Positions 4,332 through 28,818 of a DNA stretch of 64,000 bases are shown here, one piece after another (within the stretch, counting starts at the first letter, position 1; the number at the start of each line of letters is the position of its first letter). The translations under genes were made by a program, and so were the position numbers. The stretch comes from Lepidodermella squamata (taxonomy: Eukaryota > Animalia > Gastrotricha). The stretch spans positions 2,294,001-2,358,000 of the forward strand of contig JBLDXI010000032.1 of assembly GCA_047495785.1 (NCBI GenBank). Reading direction: 5' to 3'. The notes under the pieces were generated by a model that was given only the letters and a program-made list of their open reading frames with translations, made no database searches and was not told where the DNA came from.

Positions 4332-4795
4332 TACAATCAGATTAAAAAATGAACTATGCCTGATTTCGTTAAAATGTGACACCCACCGAACCCCTTCACC
4401 CTCACCTACCCTTATTGTGCCTCTTATCTTACAAAATAATGTCACTTCTGTCATCACTTTGAAATCATATGTTTCTATCCTTGCTTCTATTCTTATCTTA
4501 CACCCTGAATTCACCCGCCACTATGCTTATCCCAGCGGAACTGGGGTTTAAATGCAACAGAGTAAACATTTACTTACGCAAATGGATACTGTTACCACGA
4601 ACTTCCGCTTCGCAGCGCATTAGACGCTGACTTCAACCCTCAGCTTTTAGAATCCGACTAGAGATACCTTGAGGAATAATATATATTACATGTACAGGAT
4701 GTTTGCTCGCTACCCTGGCTGAGTTCTCATTCTATACGTTTATAAGCCGTTCTAAGAAATATTTTGGCATCGAATTCCTTTTTTGAATAAAAAAT

Positions 4796-9229: not shown

Positions 9230-10267
9230 CTTTAATAAATAAAATCTACATAAAGAAATAAGAATAAATCAGTGGGAGGAGACGCCACATTGTCGAGAAC
9301 ATCAATCGTGAAACCCGTGGACATCATAGAGATGATTTATAGCAGCATTGATTGATTGAATAGCAACCCCAGCCTCCCAATGTTTGAAATGTCAATATCT
9401 CACGCCCTAGAGCATCGATTATATACGCCAAATGCACTAAACTTGATCATTAGCCCAACAACTTTAATGCTACAGTATCTAATCAACTGAAGCATGAGTG
9501 TCTTGGGTGTCAGCAAAATTGAGGTCAACCTGTATAAAACCTCAAGAGTTTAGGTAAGGAGAGTCGAAGTTGCATACGAAGACATGTAGACCATGGCTGG
9601 CGAAGAGTAAAGAAACAAAGACCCTAGCTACCCCATACGAGAGTCAGGCAAGACGGAGTCCTTTGGTCATCGGAATTCCACCATCCATCAAGCATGTAAC
9701 CTCTCTTCGGACAATTGGGGCGCCGTTTTTCTTGATTTTCGAGAGAACAGGGCTTTCCGCAATTTTTTACGGAAAACTTGTTCTCACATCTTATTATATT
9801 TGCATTACTAATAAAATTTCATATTTAATTTCAATAATTTAAGCCGCATTTCTAGTTTTTACTTTCAAGCGTCTATCGTTACTGCACATGTTACTCTACG
9901 CGCGTGCAACAGGTGAGTTATCGTTTTTTCATCCCCTTCTTGTCACAGTGGTTGGGGAGGTCAACTGCTGGAGAGTGTTTGCTTGAACTTCAATTTTGTC
10001 GTGAGCGCGGCACTGCCGTCGCTCGCTTTCGCTTCTCATTTCCGCCTATCAGATGATTTGAAAACTAACGGCATGGACTGATTGTCACTGTTCCCTGTTC
10101 CCATGCGTCCAACAAGTTGAACCCATGTTCTATGAAGCAGATGAAGACTAAACTAAACCGTGTAAAACACTGCTACCGCAATGACTTGTTAGTATCTTGT
10201 AATTACTCTTGCAACAAATGGCTAGTATTTCGTCTTATTTTTATCATCTTCATTTCCTTATCCATAT

Positions 10268-18888: not shown

Positions 18889-19929
18889 TCAAACAACCTC
18901 TTTGAGGACTTCCATAGTCTTCTTGATGCCTTCGACATAATTTACCAAATCATCTTCGAACTTAACACCACTAGCAGTAGCTATCGTCTTCAGATGAAAC
19001 GAATCAGCAGTAGCTTTGTCAATATTGAGCTCAAGATTCCAGTCCACCATCGACTGTTTCATAACATTCAGTTTAACGCCATTTGATTCCAGAACTGCAG
19101 ATCTCATCGGTCCCAGATAGTTGAATTCACCGTTGCCCTCGTAGAATTTCTCCAGAACATCTTGTTTGAAGTATCCACCAGACTGCGTTTCAATGCGAAA
19201 GTCAATTATCATCGGGTGCGCGCCAACTTGACCACAATTTGAGGCATTTGTAGCACAATCGCGAAGACACAAGATGCGAGATATTAGGTCTATCTGCAGT
19301 AAAGCAGTCATATTAGCAGTAGCACGAGTCAATTCAGACAACAACAGTAGCTTCACTTCTTTGGTCACAATGTACAACTCAGACTGTGAACCATGATGCG
19401 GGAAAACAAAATCAGCCTCCGGTCCAATGCCAATATATTGCAAAAGCTTATAGACAAAAACTTCCTTGAGGTTTGGACATCTGATGCCATTATGGGAGCC
19501 AGAAGCGGGACCATACTGATGAGTCTTTATAAAGTAGCGAGTCTCGCGAGGAGTATCGGCGTATACAACACAAGAGAAACCGGTCTGTATTCCGCTTCGC
19601 TTCGGATACCAAACAACACCTTTCCACTCTTCATCAGTAAGTCCAGCTTTGAAATGTAGAGCTTCCAAGTGTTTTGCCACTGCAGTCTTCATGATGACGG
19701 GATCGGCATCTAGATATTCTGCGATTTTCGGCAACAGTTGCATGAACTGGCTAGTGCGATCCACATTTTTCTCATGGACTTTCGATATGTGAAAGCTATT
19801 AGCCAAGTCAAGTGCAAGGCGCGCCATTGTCAAGCGAATTTCACCACGCATCTGATGAATGCTATTTCCTATGTCGACGAACTGCTGCCAGCGTGCTTCC
19901 GCTTCGTCATCCTGAGAGCTCGCTGACAT
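18889..19929 (-). CDS. Intronless atypical kinase-like protein (HipA/CtkA/LepB-N/PI3-4K-like fold), ~346 aa
   Basis: Gly-containing KRSGIQTG, YFIKTH (Lys), KEVFVYKLLQYIGIGP (Glu), LRDCATNASN (catalytic-loop-like) and IIDF (DFG-like); uninterrupted ORF. Confidence 0.65.
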   Translation of the reverse strand: MSASSQDDEAEARWQQFVDIGNSIHQMRGEIRLTMARLALDLANSFHISKVHEKNVDRTSQFMQLLPKIAEYLDADPVIMKTAVAKHLEALHFKAGLTDEEWKGVVWYPKRSGIQTGFSCVVYADTPRETRYFIKTHQYGPASGSHNGIRCPNLKEVFVYKLLQYIGIGPEADFVFPHHGSQSELYIVTKEVKLLLLSELTRATANMTALLQIDLISRILCLRDCATNASNCGQVGAHPMIIDFRIETQSGGYFKQDVLEKFYEGNGEFNYLGPMRSAVLESNGVKLNVMKQSMVDWNLELNIDKATADSFHLKTIATASGVKFEDDLVNYVEGIKKTMEVLKEVV

Positions 19930-20469: not shown

Positions 20470-20770
20470 CTCACACCGCATCCACAAATGTCGTAAGACC
20501 CGGCGTAAAATGGTCATCGTTGCCCTCGACGTGCAGGCGGCCTACGATAGTGTTTGGCATGCTGGACTGATCTACAAGTTATTGCAATTGCCCCTGCCCC
20601 GCAATCTCGTCGGCTGGATAGTTGATTACCTCCGTGACCGCAAGCTGCAGGCCCGTGTGGCTGGTCACCTGAGCAGGGTCGCCACCGTCAACTGCGGCGT
20701 ACCCCAAGGGTCTCCTCTCTCCCCCTTGCTATACATCCTATACACGGCCGACCTCCTCATCGCAGAACCA
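20470..20770 (+). mobile_element. Non-LTR retrotransposon reverse transcriptase fragment (Jockey/I-like)
   Basis: VALDVQAAYDSVWHAGLIYKL...GVPQGSPLSPLLYILYTADL; interrupts duplication copy B. Confidence 0.9.
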
Positions 20771-22445
20771 TATAAATAGACAAATTTTCACAGACATAAA
20801 TTGCTATAATTAGTTAGGACATGGAAACAGGGAAATGCTGAAACTAATAGCTAATAACAATCACTAAAGTGGACACTTTTCATAGCCACGCTGGAAAGAA
20901 ACAATCAGTCGACGCCGCTGGTTTACTAGTCTACTCGTAGTTGGAAATGAGAAGCGAAGGCGACGTTATACGCCCATAACAAACAAGAAGTTGCGTAAAC
21001 ACTCTCCATCAGCTGATCTCTCTGAAACCTGACAAGAAAAGAAGAGGCTCTTTCCGCAATTTTTAACGGAAAACTTGTTTTCACATTTTATTATAATTGC
21101 AGCATCAATATAATTTTATATGTAATTTTAATAATTCTAGTCGTATTTCCAATTTTTACTCTCAAGCAGGCCTAGGCATTTTAGCGCCAAAACCCGCCCA
21201 GCAAACCCACGGGCGGGCCGGGCGGTCCAAACGGGACCCGCTTTCTTCACTTGTTTTAATGCCTTCCAAAAAAACTGAATATCAAGGTTAATTGTAATAA
21301 TGAGGTAAAAGTACGACAAAATGGATATAAATAGAACAGCCGACAGTTGCCGTGAGCAGCTGTAAAGGGAAGCCGTGGGCATTACGGGTGACTGGCTGTA
21401 GATGTTTGGGAAATGAAAGTCCATGCGGTAAATGAACAAATGGCCTGTTGGATGTAGGCTCAATGTGCTGCGCCTTGCTGCGCCGCTCTAAACGGCGCCA
21501 CGTGCGGGAACGTAACGCTTCAGATCAAATGGTTGCCATGGCAACGCTTGCGATGGCCGTACATGTTGACTTAACTGTGTACGTCTCGGAATGTACGTTC
21601 TTAGGTGCATGAATCTGTTATGGAATGGAGATGTCCCAGAACCGGGAAGATACGACCAACAAATGACAGGAAGAAGCTGGGGAATAGAGACAGAGATGTT
21701 ACATGTGAACTGGTTAATGACGTCAATGCAAGGACCTTGCGGAAGCGCAACATTCCAGGCCACCGCCACCACTCCCCAACTGAATGGCGAATAATTTAAT
21801 TTCAGTATCCTGTTAATGCTGTTACATGCCGGTTATGTTGAAGAATGTCACCATCGGAGTGCCTTCACGCTAGTGGAAATAGTGCAATAATGAAAGATCG
21901 CGAGGGATGTGTTTAGTTCAAACTCAGTCAATTAAATTACTCCATTCGTAGTAAAATCGTAATACATATTATCCTCTACACAAATTCTAAAAAAGCCCGA
22001 GAAATTACCTTAAGTCTTGATAAGTGGGCTGCCATTTACACTGAAATATGTATGCCACAGGCTGTTGTCCAAGACTTATTTCATCTTCCGATCAAGCAAT
22101 AATGCCGAACAACTATCGACATTACTTACGAAATAAGTTTCTTTTCAAAACCCGTCTATTGCAAAGTAATGAAAGCAATAGCTGTATTCCTGCTTCCTGC
22201 TGGTACGGCTTATCGCATAAACTGTCAAGAACAATTTCTTTGTTGGCAAACGTCAAACCTGGAAAAAATATTGACAGTAGCCCACCAGATTAAAAACCGG
22301 CAGAAAACATTAACACAATACAGAATGATGACATCATTTTTATTACTTAACATTGTTATATGTACCTGTTTCATCTAAGATTTGGTGAGCGAAACACATA
22401 AAGAGATTAAATGAGTTTAATACAATCGTTTCATTGTTTCGGTTA

Positions 22446-22858
22446 TTAATCTACGGCTAAGGCCAAACGTCTCAGGTCTCCTTTCAGATCTTCGTAAACT
22501 GTCTCAACCAGATTGGGCACAACTTTAGCGACCATGTGTTCCACAACGGTGGCCACAATGAATGATCGAAATTCGGGCCATTTCACGTGATCGATAATGC
22601 AAGTTGCCTCGTCTACCGCCGCCTGTTCTATGCAAGATAAAGCGTCATTAACCTGGTCCTCGACCGATTCCTTTATTCTGGCACCGAACTGCATGAGAAA
22701 TTGTAAACAGATAAATACATACATGGGAGAATTAAAGGAACAACCTCAAACAGCATATTATCCCATTCCTCACGAACAATCTCCTCGCATGTTTTCGACT
22801 TCTTCAACGGCGGTTCAGTCAAAGATGTGGGTAATTTTCTTTGACGCGTGTGGTCCAT
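22446..22858 (-). CDS. Small helical cargo protein X2 inside the hAT (118 aa, 2 exons), paralog of X1
   Basis: MDHTRQRKLP...PPLKKSK...MLFE|FGARIKESVEDQVNDALSCI...WPEFR...YEDLKGDL; 56-nt intron at 22689-22744, at the same aligned position as in X1. Confidence 0.65.
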
Positions 22859-23081
22859 GAAATCATATACCAGACGCTTCAATTACCGTAATAAGAGCGG
22901 TTAAAACCTACAAATTATTATAAAATGTAACAGTGGCCTGGGTAATAAGGGAAAATATTTCTCATCCATATCCACGCTCTTAAGCGTAGGGAAAGTGTAA
23001 GGCTTTAAATTAACCTAGTGGCAACAGACGCAACTGTGTAATGACGAGTGATAGCATTGACCGCGGAAATAATTGGAAATA

Positions 23082-23429
23082 TTAATCACGAATATTGCCG
23101 TTAGCAATCCACCGAAGAATGTCCTCCTTAAGTTCAGTATAAAGCCGTAGCTTAACTTCTGTCACCACACGTTCAACTATTTCGTCCCTCACATCTTCAA
23201 TGATCTGTCTCCGAAAATCGGGCCAATTATCCGCATTGGTCATCATATCCAGGGCTTCCTCTGTGGCTTCGTGGATGCAGCTAATCGCTTCGTTCAACTC
23301 CGATTCCATTACCTCGGTGATGTGCTGTTCCGCCTACAACTCATTAAATAAATCATCGCAGTGCCCATTGGAAAATAAACTTACATCATCCATCAGTTTA
23401 TTTGCCTCGGCAGTAATGTCCTCGGTCAT
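23082..23429 (-). CDS. Small acidic helical cargo protein X1 inside the hAT (98 aa, 2 exons)
   Basis: MTEDITAEANKLMDD|AEQHITEVMESELNEAISCI...; 51-nt gtaag...tag intron at 23334-23384 joins the exons in frame. Confidence 0.65.
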
Positions 23430-23615
23430 GTCGAATAAGTACGCATAAACATAATTAGCTACAACCAAAAATTCAAGGAGGAAAAGACAAAATGGAGAGA
23501 CATTGGTGCTTATTGCTGGGATAAACTTGGCGACGCCCATAGCGGGGGTAACGTCAAATAATATTAAATAATTTCACCTCTCCATAAATAAAATAAGGGC
23601 GGCCATGGCGTTATA

Positions 23616-26600
23616 TCACAGTTTCATGGACAGCCGGAAGGCATTTTCAACCTCCATTAAGCAGCCGACGGTGCTAGGCAACAAATTGGCACGCTGGTCG
23701 GAACAGGTGAGGCCGCTACGACTAAACCGACGCTCTGCTTCTGACGACGAGGCCGGAGTTTGGAGTAGCAGAACTGCAACATAAGCAAGTGTGGGCCAAG
23801 TGTGGCGCTTCTCCCACCACCAGTTCAGCAGATCGCCGATTTTCGGAGGAGCGGTCATTGCGAGATATTGGTCACGCTCCTGCTGTAGGGTTAGCCTACG
23901 CACGGAACCATTAGGCCTAGCATACATTGCGTCCAAAAAATGCGGGGGCTCATCGGTCTCCACTTGCAACACCTCCTCCTGCTGGCGCTGGTCAATCATG
24001 GGCATTCGTGTCGCCACCCTTTCTTGTAAACGCTGCAAATACGACAATGCACGATCCATGGCGTCTTGTTCAAGGTACATGCCGTCTAGCCAGTTGTCTT
24101 TCGCCAACGGATCGAGGAGTGTAGCCACGCAGTGAAGTAGGTCGATACTAAAGCGCTCGTTAATTTCAGCCTGCCCCACCTTAAATGAAATATTAATAGC
24201 ATAGTTATTAATGAGTTAAATAGAATGTTATTTTTGGTCACCTTACGCATGTCTCGCACAACCTGGATTTCATCCAGTGGCGCTCGCGACAAATGGATTT
24301 GAAGGAATTTGTGCGTAACTAATACGCGATGGAATGTGGGAACGTCCACTTTCTCCAGCTCCAAGGTAATCCTGTTTGAAAAAAAAATTAACGATTTGGC
24401 TCCAATTAAACACAACCATATACTCTTTAAATGGCAACAGGAACGCCAGCAGTTGCTCCATATCTGCTTTTCTCAGGCTGTGATGGGCATCCAACAAGTC
24501 AGGTTGTTCCCTCGCATGAAGAATATTGACTAATCGGTCGTAATTTTCGTAAATTGACCGCAGGGAGTCATAAAGATAGGACCAGCGCGTTTCGCAAAGC
24601 GTCTTCACCTTGTATTCAAGCTGGTGGGCTACGTCTGGCTGCCTACCAATGGCTATTACCTTACGTAATCTGTAAGTAGTAGAATCATGGGCTAATAAAT
24701 GGACGAAATGATTCGCAACAGTGTTTGGGATTTCACTGATTCCATTTTGATTACAAAGATTTTGGGGTCATTTCAGTATGATTTGAATATTTCGACAAAT
24801 TAAATTAGAAATTGGTTGATTGGAATTCTTGGCAAACGATTTCTCCAGTTTTTTACCGATGTTTCCCAACAACTTGTAAGCCTAATCAGGTCTCAATTTA
24901 TGATAATATTAGCCATAATTTTAATATTGGTTGGACTGAAATATATTCCCTAATATTTAGTCCCAAAATCGGAATAAATCAAATCCCAGACACTGATTCG
25001 CATATCCATTACATACCCGTCGATGAATTCCGATACAATTGGGCCGCCCTCCTTGATCATCCATTTGATCGTTAGGTGAACACCATGAGGGCCACAGAAA
25101 ACCTGGGCAATATCAGATTCCGACCCGAGCGCAAAATTTGACCCCTTGTCCGTTACTGCAATGGTTAAACCTGACAGACGATATAAATTATTACACCTCA
25201 GGCGTTTCTGGTATTATACAACATCGCCTACCAAGAGCATTGGCCGGCAAGGCCTCCACCTTTGCCTGGATGTATTCGCTAACGGCTGCTATCGTCGCTG
25301 ATGCGGGGAAGTGGTTGAAGCTTAGCTGCATGGAGTTTAAACGCAGCTTGGGTCCCTCTACCGTTGCGAAGTGACCTGTGATGGTTATGAACTTGTCCTA
25401 TTTATTGGAAATGGCAAAAATTACAAATTCAACGCCCCATAGTTTATTGAATTACCTTGTTGTTGTCATCGGTCCACATATCTGAGGTGTAACTGGAGCC
25501 CAGGACAGCTTTTTGCTCCATGCCCCACACCACCTTGCGACACTCAGCAGCGAGGGCGGGTAATCTGCGATGTAGCGCTGTTGCCTCCGGAAGTAAATTT
25601 TTTGCAGCGATACCTGGGTATTCAGCCGCAATGCGGAGGGCGCTATCCATCATTGAGATGAAACCCAGGTCATTGACGATCGAAAACGGCTGGAAATCAT
25701 GGGCTATCATTTTCAGGAAATCATCGGTGAATTCCTGGCGAACTAGGGGCGGCAATTCGACTCCAGTTCCAGTACCTCCACAACCTCGGGGACATTTGTG
25801 CCGCCACATGGCGCTTGTCCCAGTACTAGCCTCCGCCTTGTAAAGCTCGTAGCATCGAATGCAAGCTGCATATGAACCCTTCACCTCGTTCCTCAGATTT
25901 TCAGGTACTTCGACCGATGCGAAATTCGCCCACACCTTCGACTTCTTCGCGGAAGGTTCCATCATGCTTGCACTGCCCGATATAATGGCTTGCTTCAGGA
26001 CAGCTTTTTCCTGGCTGGTCGCTTTATTTGAAGCTACTTTCAACGTGACTGCCCTTGTTTTCGGCGCAACTGGTGGTTGAGCGGCTGGTCCTGAGGCGAC
26101 TCTATTTCCAGATACAGTTGCAGTCAAAGGTCGATGAGAGACCACCTGACGGCACCCGGCAGGCCCCGCGATTACAGCAACATCCTCCACAACGTTCGCC
26201 TCGCCATCTAGGGCTGGGCGGTAACGACGGGGTTCGGTAATTGACGACTTCTGTGCCGCTCCGCTTATTCCGCCACCTGTGGAATGCAAGCCCAAAGGAA
26301 CGTTGCTAGAACGACCTGGCGCGAATGATCGTGTAGTTCTGGTAGGGGAGGAAGCGCCCAGCAAGCGAGAGGATCCACCAAGGGTGCTACTCTGATGCAT
26401 TTTTCCCGAGCTGGCAGGCTGACTTGCAGCAGCCCTGTTCTGTAAACAAGTGAGCAAAAGTTTTTAGGCCCTATTCGGAACACGTTTTTATTTTTTATTA
26501 CCACGTTCGATGAAGTTGCTGGTTGTTGCGACATGTTAGCAGCGCGCTATTTTCAAAAATAATAGATCAATTACACGGATTAGGATCATTGTTGATTCAT

Positions 26601-27230
26601 GCCTGTATAGTGTCAAATAAAGTAGAGTTATATCGGTTCTGCATCAGCGGATATTTCTCAAAAACGGTGTTGGGGGCATGACGTTTTGGCTCATTGAGGT
26701 TACAATCCTGTCCGCCTCTGGGGAATAATATTGTTCAATTATTTCAAAAAAGTTATTTTTGTAAATTACCTTAGCGACAGCCGATGGGTGCCAGAGGAAC
26801 TTCCGCTACCTGACGGGTGCTCAAGAACCACTGATATTGATTCCGTGGCATAATGTCCACCGCCGGAATAACTCCCATCGCTATGCCTTCCTCTGTTCAG
26901 GTAAGGATAATGTAACCAATATAACACTTTCCTATTTTATTTCATGTTGTTTAACCTTTGAAGTCCTGAAGTAGACGGCTCGTTTTCTCCAAAAGGATTC
27001 AGGAAATCGCATGATAAATCGGCAGATCTTGCGCCTTCATTGCCGTTACTCCGTCGGTTAACATCGGCCAACCCGCGATGCAGTACACCAGTGGGCGTTT
27101 GTGACCCTGCCCCGCCGTAGCCATTGCCGGCTAATGTCGACATGCGGCTTTCGCGCGCGGCCAGGCGCTCAGCTTCCTCCTGCGCAATCTCGTCAGGCTC
27201 AATAGGCGGGCAGTAATCATCTTCCTCCAT
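23616..27230 (-). CDS. hAT transposase with BED zinc finger (multi-exon; 5' exons tentative)
   Basis: BED finger SKVWANF...CIRC...GTSAMWRHKC; IAHDFQPFSIV; TSDMWTD (D1); VTDKGSN (D2); CGPH (CxxH); ETRWS; C-terminal LLNWWW...PASSSEAERRFS (E). Confidence 0.9.
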
Positions 27231-28818
27231 ATCAATGATAGCCTAAATTGCGAGATTGAAAATTTATGGATGACGTCTGCAATGGTTGGCAATTATATTT
27301 ATAATATGTATATTCATAACGCCTGTAACAACTTCATCATCCAGCACTATCATACTTTATTGATAAGTTTATTAGCACATGTGTCGCCACATTGCAGATG
27401 AAACCGTTTCCCCTTCCAATAAATAGACGTGGCAACACCGGTTGCATACAGGCATTGATTGGGGCTTTTCTTGAACGGGCATAGTGTAAAGAGTAAACGT
27501 GCGTCAAGCCATGTGTTTGCGTGGAGGCGACTTTACTTCACCGGAGGAAATCTGTGTTGAAAACAGAAATTATCATAACCCACACACCAAATCTGTCACT
27601 CACTGTGCTATGTTGGACGAACACATGGAACTTATTTTGTAGACATCGTTGAATCGCGTAAACCATATCACAGCGATTCGCCGCGTACATCCCCAAATAC
27701 GTTAATAACCTGTATAAAGAACGGCAAATATTAATTGAAGCATTCACTTCATTGACTTGGTCAGGAATAATAACGTCATTTAGGTATATCTTACTTGTAA
27801 GTTTCTACTGTTAACACATGAGAAGTCGAAATGACAGTTATGATTGTCATTCTAATATACCGTTAAACGACATATTTATACCCGCAGGTAAATGTCGCCG
27901 CTATTCAATGAATCATAGCCAGTTATACAGCCGTTGTTAATTAATCGGTGTTTGATACCTATGAGGAAAAGGGACTTAACGACATCAAACGATTCTGCAG
28001 TATCATTCCCACCAAACGACGTTGCACGCGCTTAGGGAGCGCTCCGCACATGTTTTTTGCATATTTCCGTGTTTTTTACGGTCCAATCACTCAATCGCCT
28101 AACCACCGATCTATTTCGATTGTGAATCATCCACTTATCTGCGCGTAGCCGAGAAGCGTAGCCAACTTTCGAATGGCCCGCCTTAGCAACGCGTCCATTT
28201 CCTTCATGTTTATTTTTAACGTTTTTTAATTCTTCAACATTTTTTATTAAAATAACATATTTTATTTGCCTATTAATGGGTCCCACGTAACCCAGCCCAC
28301 TGGGCGGTTTGCGCGGGCAATGCCTAAGTGCCTAGCTCTGCTCTCAAGCGTCTATCGTTACCGCACATGTTGCTCTATCTACTCGCATGCAACAGGTGAG
28401 TTATCCTTTTTCATCCCTTTCCTGCCACAGTGGTTTGAGAGATTAACTGATGGAGAGTGTTTGAACAAACTTCAATGTTTTATGGGCGTATAGCGGCGCT
28501 GCCGTCGCCTTCCTTTCACTTATCTCTCTTCACTTTCACTTAACAGACGACTTGCAAACTAACGGCATCGACTGATTGTCACTGTTCCCGTGCGTCCAAA
28601 AAGTTGTCCGCGTTCTTTGGAGCAGATAAAGGCTAAACTAAACTAAACTAAAGACTAAAACACCGCTACCGCAATGACTCGTTAGTATCTTGCAATCACT
28701 CTTGCAATCAATGGCAAGTATTTTGTCTCATTTTTCTCATCCATTCAGTTTCTCATCCTTGTAGCTTCATTATAGCTCATCCTTCTTATATTAATTGAAA
28801 AGTCATTCCAATATTGCC

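Follow-up and report, generated by a model that had tools for sequence, protein, structure and literature searches.

The classical hAT element is a one-gene transposon and encodes a transposase only. Known accessory proteins of DNA transposons include the Myb-like protein of PIF/Harbinger and TnpA of CACTA/En-Spm. To our knowledge, the capture of whole protein-coding genes by DNA transposons has rarely been documented in animals. VANC is the accessory protein of VANDAL/Mutator (PMC5735166, PMC10398659). Accessory genes of this type are conserved over many copies and lineages within their own superfamily, and anti-silencing, DNA binding and nuclear import have been shown for them. In Dothideomycete fungi, a hAT element transduplicated histone H3 (PMC6710886); the cargo is a known housekeeping gene, an intronless retrocopy, present in hundreds of copies and then inactivated. 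Turmoil-1 of C. elegans carries fragments of known host genes within long inverted repeats; by the account of the paper on it, no other case of protein-coding genes being transduplicated was then known in animals (PMC2572040).

The animal hAT described here is sharply delimited by its ends, its target duplication and an empty site, and contains, besides the transposase gene, three further genes with introns. It lies in a stretch of 64,000 nucleotides from Lepidodermella squamata, analysed as a whole (the window). Similar to the fungal histone H3 element in terminal inverted repeats, 8-bp target-site duplication, transposase, one or two copies of the cargo and unusual length. Differs from it in carrying two diverged, intron-containing members of an orphan family (X1 and X2) and a third orphan gene, in being single-copy and in having no identifiable donor. 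Differs from Turmoil-1 in that two complete, spliced genes of an orphan family occupy the unique internal part. Like the accessory genes of VANDAL, Harbinger and CACTA elements, X1 and X2 are small, non-catalytic and placed within the inverted repeats beside the transposase gene; the X family, too, is linked elsewhere in the genome to a transposase, of CMC/EnSpm-like kind. Unlike VANC-type genes, X1 and X2 are present in one copy, are known from sequence alone and are without a recognisable DNA-binding fold.

X1 and X2 are located inside one hAT insertion of 7174 bp (7.2 kb), window 21167–28340. The ends and the target site are as follows.

21159–21166, no strand: target-site duplication, left copy, 8 bp, CTCTCAAG
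21167–21178, plus strand: left terminal inverted repeat, CAGGCCTAGGCA, complementary to the right end at 10 of 12 positions
28329–28340, minus strand: right terminal inverted repeat, CAGAGCTAGGCA read inward
28341–28348, no strand: target-site duplication, right copy, CTCTCAAG, perfect match to the left copy
9744–10207, plus strand: empty-site paralogue of the insertion site, colinear with both flanks, uninterrupted

The ends were obtained by scanning all position pairs for 12-nt inverted repeats bordered by an 8-bp duplication, either exact or nearly so. Positions 20800–23616, which span X1 and X2, were paired with those to the right of the transposase's long 5' ORF. One match was found in the ranges covered and none in the reversed-arm control; the chance expectation, with the duplication exact, is about 0.005. 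The ends are of the CAG type. The subterminal 75 nt are alike between the left and right ends. The left flank (21040–21166) is 83% identical to 9744–9869, the right flank (28341–28700) 76% identical to 9862–10207, and at the empty site the two matches have precisely one 8-bp site, CTTTCAAG (9862–9869), in common. Because the empty-site paralogue holds a single target site and the ends are present, the 7174 bp between them constitute one hAT-type insertion. The carrier thus has an 8-bp duplication, short CAG-type inverted ends and the transposase domains of a hAT. The initial annotation had a hAT carry the pair; the ends, the duplication and the empty-site paralogue bear this out.

Two further pairs of repeats were considered as element ends and rejected. 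The inverted repeats 20901–21022 and 28437–28579 are copies of an interspersed repeat and lie outside the true ends. The 21-nt pair at 22368 and 27404 rests on a 9-nt seed that recurs by chance. The repeat at window 20787–21046 is short (about 260 bp) and interspersed: other contigs contain at least 8 further copies (76–92%), and an inverted partial copy is located at 28432–28499. The hAT target is a larger repeat unit, also present at window 9744–10207. Just left of the insertion site, window 20510–20779 (plus strand) is a fragment with reverse transcriptase motifs of a non-LTR retrotransposon, VALDVQAAYDSVWH...GVPQGSPLSPLLY, recognised by eye. Window 18889–19929 (minus strand) is a 346-codon single-exon ORF, MSASSQDDEAEARW..., with no Pfam family and no exact protein match.

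Upstream of X1 and X2, on the same strand, the element contains a transposase gene and a further gene, designated gene A.

26534–23616, minus strand: hAT transposase gene, seven exons, 758 codons, no internal stop
26534–26502, 26439–25456, 25397–25232 and 25170–25017, minus strand: transposase exons 1–4
24669–24424, 24371–24242 and 24179–23616, minus strand: transposase exons 5–7
27230–26597, minus strand: gene A, exons 27230–26956, 26892–26770 and 26717–26597, 172 codons, Ser/Gly-rich

All six transposase introns are GT-AG and frame-compatible. In Pfam, Dimer_Tnp_hAT (PF05699) is matched at 9e-11 and DBD_Tnp_Hermes (PF10683) above the cut-off. The motifs SDMWTD, VTDKGSNF, CGPHGVH, ETRWSY and SEAERRFS (D, D, E, CxxH, RW) were identified by eye in the exon translations. 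The transposase gene is apparently intact. hAT transposase genes with several exons are known, e.g. that of BuT2 (PMC3942097). Gene A is a probable three-exon orphan gene, its exons presumably joined by splicing; no Pfam family and no second copy in the genome were found for it. Gene A ends 62 nt before the transposase ATG.

The hAT element is single-copy in the 121-Mb genome, with one full copy. Window 21300–23600 has no DNA-level match anywhere else in the genome. No other copy of either hAT end was found in the genome, i.e. the several copies by which a mobile family is recognised are not seen. The sole other copy of the transposase is a broken fragment at C9:3865669–3867134 (L055:4170–5687), devoid of X genes. 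It matches window 23746–25836 at 76–83% DNA identity over about 1.5 kb, in the coding region only, with stops present; the fourth intron (347 nt) lacks its middle, and the last exon its first 96 codons. Since the short introns persist, the fragment is a DNA copy and not a retrocopy. The initial annotation had the pair maintained within a hAT family; this is not supported for a single-copy element whose only other transposase copy is a fragment lacking X genes. No second hAT copy with X genes was found, i.e. the pair does not stand beside the transposase in independent copies, as an accessory gene would. An isolated 199-bp copy (91%) of window 26504–26702 is located at C31:1352127–1352325 (L057). 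It spans the third exon of gene A and the beginning of the transposase gene, in surroundings without anything recognisable.

Gene A, the transposase gene, X1 and X2 are on one strand, separated by spacers of 62, 186 and 223 nt. An acceptor-like AG is present 12–50 nt ahead of each ATG. The four genes are a possible polycistronic unit, as judged from their arrangement. A single copy with an intact 758-codon, seven-exon transposase gene, together with these spacers and acceptor-like AGs, is also what would be seen if the hAT no longer moved and its four genes served the host as a packed, possibly polycistronic, unit. Such an immobilised, co-opted element is considered improbable, since the ends and the target duplication are perfect or near-perfect, pointing to a rather recent insertion, and since the transposase, with its catalytic motifs intact, is without marks of domestication. 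Nor was any clear poly(A) signal spacing found between the genes when the sequence was read by eye.

X1 and X2 have the following structure.

23429–23385, minus strand: X1 exon 1, 15 codons, no basic motif
23384–23334, minus strand: X1 intron, 51 nt, GTAAGT...TTGTAG, phase 0
23333–23082, minus strand: X1 exon 2, 83 codons and TAA
22858–22745, minus strand: X2 exon 1, 38 codons, with the family motif RQRKLPTSLTEPP
22744–22689, minus strand: X2 intron, 56 nt, GTTGTT...ATGCAG, phase 0
22688–22446, minus strand: X2 exon 2, 80 codons and TAA, family-invariant W, P, R and V kept

X1 is 98 codons and X2 118 codons in length, each with an ATG start and a TAA stop. The hAT transposase gene is upstream on the same strand, with its stop at 23616. 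Intron position and phase are identical in X1 and X2 and, by alignment, in the canonical family member L046. The exon-2 peptides align without gaps, with 23 of 70 residues identical (33%, E 6e-13); WP[D/E]FR and Y[T/E][E/D]LK[E/G]D are common to both. The initial annotation is accurate on these points: two 2-exon genes downstream of a hAT transposase and on its strand, with the lengths, translations and phase-0 introns it gave, that align without gaps and share both motif strings. Non-synonymous differences between X1 and X2 are fewer than the neutral expectation (p 0.008; synonymous sites are saturated). The chance of both frames staying open in random sequence is about 3e-5.

All searches and folds of X1, X2, gene A and the transposase were run on single exons. 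Pfam gave nothing above threshold for X1, X2 or the X family. X1 exon 2 and a canonical exon 2 have no match among 5.8 billion proteins searched through a word index. The family profile, run against 1.84 billion protein representatives, gave two marginal matches and no relative; one match is a repeated Sec1-like protein in which a short W-x-E-L-R-H stretch is matched three times, the other a protein of 4149 aa with eight matched stretches. No X-family relative was found in PDB by sequence, and the best score in ESM Atlas (0.77) is uninformative. That the pair belongs to a family of no known affiliation, as first annotated, is in agreement with the searches of Pfam, PDB, ESM Atlas and the 1.84 billion proteins. 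The X members of this very genome are missing from the collections, which therefore probably lack its proteins. The family is seen solely in this genome as far as its sequences go, and its absence elsewhere can be trusted only to the extent that the collections sample other taxa.

AF2 models consist of two long helices for X1 exon 2 (mean pLDDT 87) and three long helices for canonical exon 2 (pLDDT 75), with low pTM, as expected for elongated helices. Foldseek found nothing for the X-family models. An all-against-all structure aligner returned tied generic coiled coils (Z about 6). No DNA-binding fold is recognisable in the X proteins. X1 and X2 are paralogues of the same plain helical build, with no domain hit and nothing in their sequences pointing to a toxin, which is not the composition of the toxin/antidote-like pair suggested at first.

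ENY2/Sus1 proteins share with the X proteins an all-helical build, a size of about 100 residues and a conserved Trp that follows the first long helix. ENY2/Sus1 was considered as a relative and rejected. PF10163 is matched by one member at 19.8 bits against a cut-off of 27 bits (E 1e-3), and by neither X1 nor X2. hhalign against the e(y)2 protein of this genome gives 3% probability, and the family profile misses e(y)2 in the genome. The models show two or three long helices, not five short ones. The canonical e(y)2/ENY2 gene is located at C13:1146547–1146795 (L028; PF10163, 121 bits), and its product is presumably closer to the vertebrate type than to that of Drosophila. The X family may resemble Akirin in its basic N-terminus and helical C-terminus ending in RRY; no Akirin-like protein was found by the family profile in the 1.84 billion sequences or in PDB.

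Besides X1 and X2, the 121-Mb genome contains 9 clear X-family loci, or up to 15 matches including weaker ones, as found by six-frame searches in which each of the two exon-2 sequences and a nine-member profile served as queries. The loci are on C15, C32 (2.2 Mb away), C33, C19, C48, C74, C42, C11 and C17, with weaker ones in addition. In the WPxFR region, W, P and R (W-P-x-x-R) and V are invariant across the family. The best-preserved members, C15, C32a and C33, possess a 77-codon exon 1 with RQRKLPRTLTEPP, a 54-nt phase-0 intron positioned as in X1 and X2, and a 106-codon exon 2 ending in QTRRYMH. A basic N-terminal motif, K/R-R-x-R-K-L-P-x-T-L-T-E-P-P, is present in most members, including X2 (RQRKLPTSLTEPP; RQRKLPRTLTEPP in C32 and C33). 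An NLS-like PPLKKSK extension had been reported as a feature of X2 only. It is present in X2 and lacking in X1; it is not private to X2, since, on comparison across the family, RQRKLPTSLTEPP is the ancestral N-terminal motif, lost by X1.

The tree separates {X1, C42, C74} from {X2, canonical members} with support of 90/89, on about 60–100 columns and with X2 as a long branch. X1 and X2 fall into different old branches and are therefore the products of an old split and not of recent tandem duplication. The pair had been described as tandem paralogues, which is correct for adjoining paralogues and incorrect for a young tandem duplicate.

Purifying selection among closer X-family pairs is clear from the codon comparisons: dN/dS is 0.12 for C32a against C33 (p 4e-5) and 0.22 for C19 against C48 (p 8e-5). 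Four loci show clear degeneration: an internal deletion at C11, truncation at C48 and C74, and, at C17, reduction to a C-terminal fragment. X1 and X2 might, after the example of these four loci, be non-functional, decaying relics that happen to be open. This is very improbable: the frames are open over 98 and 118 codons against chance, start, stop and splice sites are canonical, the four family-invariant residues are all kept in both genes, and X1 and X2 show a deficit of non-synonymous change with respect to each other.

Other members of the family are found without hAT ends or this transposase. Within 5 kb either side of ten other X-family loci, this hAT transposase is absent. A scan of these ten loci and the C9 fragment for hAT-type ends with duplication gave no match, and fuzzy matches to the TIR 12-mers in the same sequences are at chance level. 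The expectation that homologues would always be inside a hAT, put to a six-frame and profile search, is thus contradicted. The members on C15, C32a and C19 are located 2–3 kb downstream of an ORF of 514+222 codons (C15:518423–519964, L045:24–1565), on the same strand, and C33 retains the tail of this ORF. The ORF has more than 50 genomic matches and no Pfam hit of its own. Its only outside relatives match at E 1e-11 to 1e-5, include a 'transposase domain-containing protein', and weakly match Transposase_21, DUF4218 and DUF1258, domains of the CACTA/En-Spm kind. Three matches (C60:72878, C19:308107 and C4:1966222) score alike against the query, with the same bits and 50% identity; judged by these scores, they may be copies of a CMC/EnSpm-like transposon that was active not long ago. 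Other contigs carry scattered pieces of the X block, 83–90% identical. On C42, a weak match to an ORF-tail fragment directly abuts a canonical X C-terminal fragment (E 7e-18). In our reading, the X family would travel with, or be repeatedly duplicated alongside, a CMC-like transposon. At C19:2921682, the closest relative of the C15 transposase copy has no X gene. The X genes beside CMC-like ORFs could be not cargo but neighbours that were duplicated together with a dead transposase. Selection acts on C32a and C33 although the neighbouring transposase ORFs are broken or truncated, which suits a role in the host as much as one exerted in trans for a transposon.

The same observations suit a passive origin of the pair. 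The X genes would be a fast-evolving host family, of which the hAT captured two members or mobilised host DNA between two ends, as passengers useless to the element, and the open frames would reflect earlier or ongoing host-level selection. Most X members are outside any hAT, and purifying selection acts on C32a and C33, whose neighbours are remnants of dead transposases. Retention of the family intron is what a capture of genomic DNA would produce, and hAT elements are documented to have captured genes in fungi (PMC6710886). Such passive transduplication is possible, yet unlikely on balance. A closely similar host donor gene was searched for in the genome and none was found: the closest paralogues of X1 or X2 are 33–39% identical in protein, and none matches at the DNA level. 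Passive capture would require great age or the loss of its donor, yet frames, introns and invariant residues are intact. Four canonical members stand beside another type of transposase; for a plain host family, little short of block duplication would account for this arrangement.

The reading preferred here, to which we give an even chance, is that X1 and X2 are cargo acquired as DNA from a family of small coiled-coil proteins that is confined to this lineage and linked to transposons, and that they may act as adaptors. The hAT lineage would have acquired one member of each of the two old X subtypes; acquisition at the DNA level is suggested because the family intron is kept in both. The encoded proteins are predicted to be small and all-helical, with a disordered N-terminus that carries a basic motif in most members, including X2. 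They may be expressed and work in the nucleus as small adaptors of coiled-coil type, whose binding partner would be the transposase or else a host factor. The basic motif of X2, the most evident handle on function, would serve as an NLS-like or docking element, and X1, which is without it, may pair with X2. The better-conserved members, which are just downstream of CMC/EnSpm-like transposase genes and under purifying selection, lead to the reading that the family travels with DNA transposons. A benefit of the pair to its element may be supposed on these grounds; nothing shows that X1 and X2 help the hAT.

An extended form of the adaptor reading, to which little credence is given, joins these elements into a swappable helper module. 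The X family would have been recruited independently, within a single animal lineage, by two unrelated cut-and-paste superfamilies, the hAT and the CMC/EnSpm-like elements. Two ancient subtypes, the X2 type with the basic KRxRKLPxTLTEPP motif and the X1 type without it, would act together, e.g. as a heteromer taking the transposase or the DNA ends into the nucleus, or as an anti-silencing shield, and the four-gene hAT would be polycistronic and leader-trans-spliced. If the X family is indeed a helper, it would be a new class of accessory protein common to transposon superfamilies. If the pair was merely captured, the element nonetheless illustrates clearly, for an animal, that a hAT can move whole genes.

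Further observations were made around other family members. Upstream of the canonical X members, a search for a ubiquitin-like head exon gave no convincing coding exon. In L051 (C42:3497000–3506999), a 125-codon ORF at 4391–4765 (plus strand) is directly upstream of a short-type X-like ORF. It matches the zinc-finger region of the window hAT transposase weakly (E 5e-5, 32% over 47 residues) and has no Pfam hit and no tblastn hit. As a second hAT-X association, this BED-like ORF is only a lead from a short alignment. The sequence AGGCCTAG is present in the left end of the hAT. The palindromic octamer TAGGCCTA occurs once in the 64-kb window, is in no other family locus, and is present in 4–6 copies at L046:6297–6407 and L047:4245–4314. 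These clusters are located about 1.1 kb downstream of the C32a and C33 members, near the end of homology, and resemble a subterminal repeat array.
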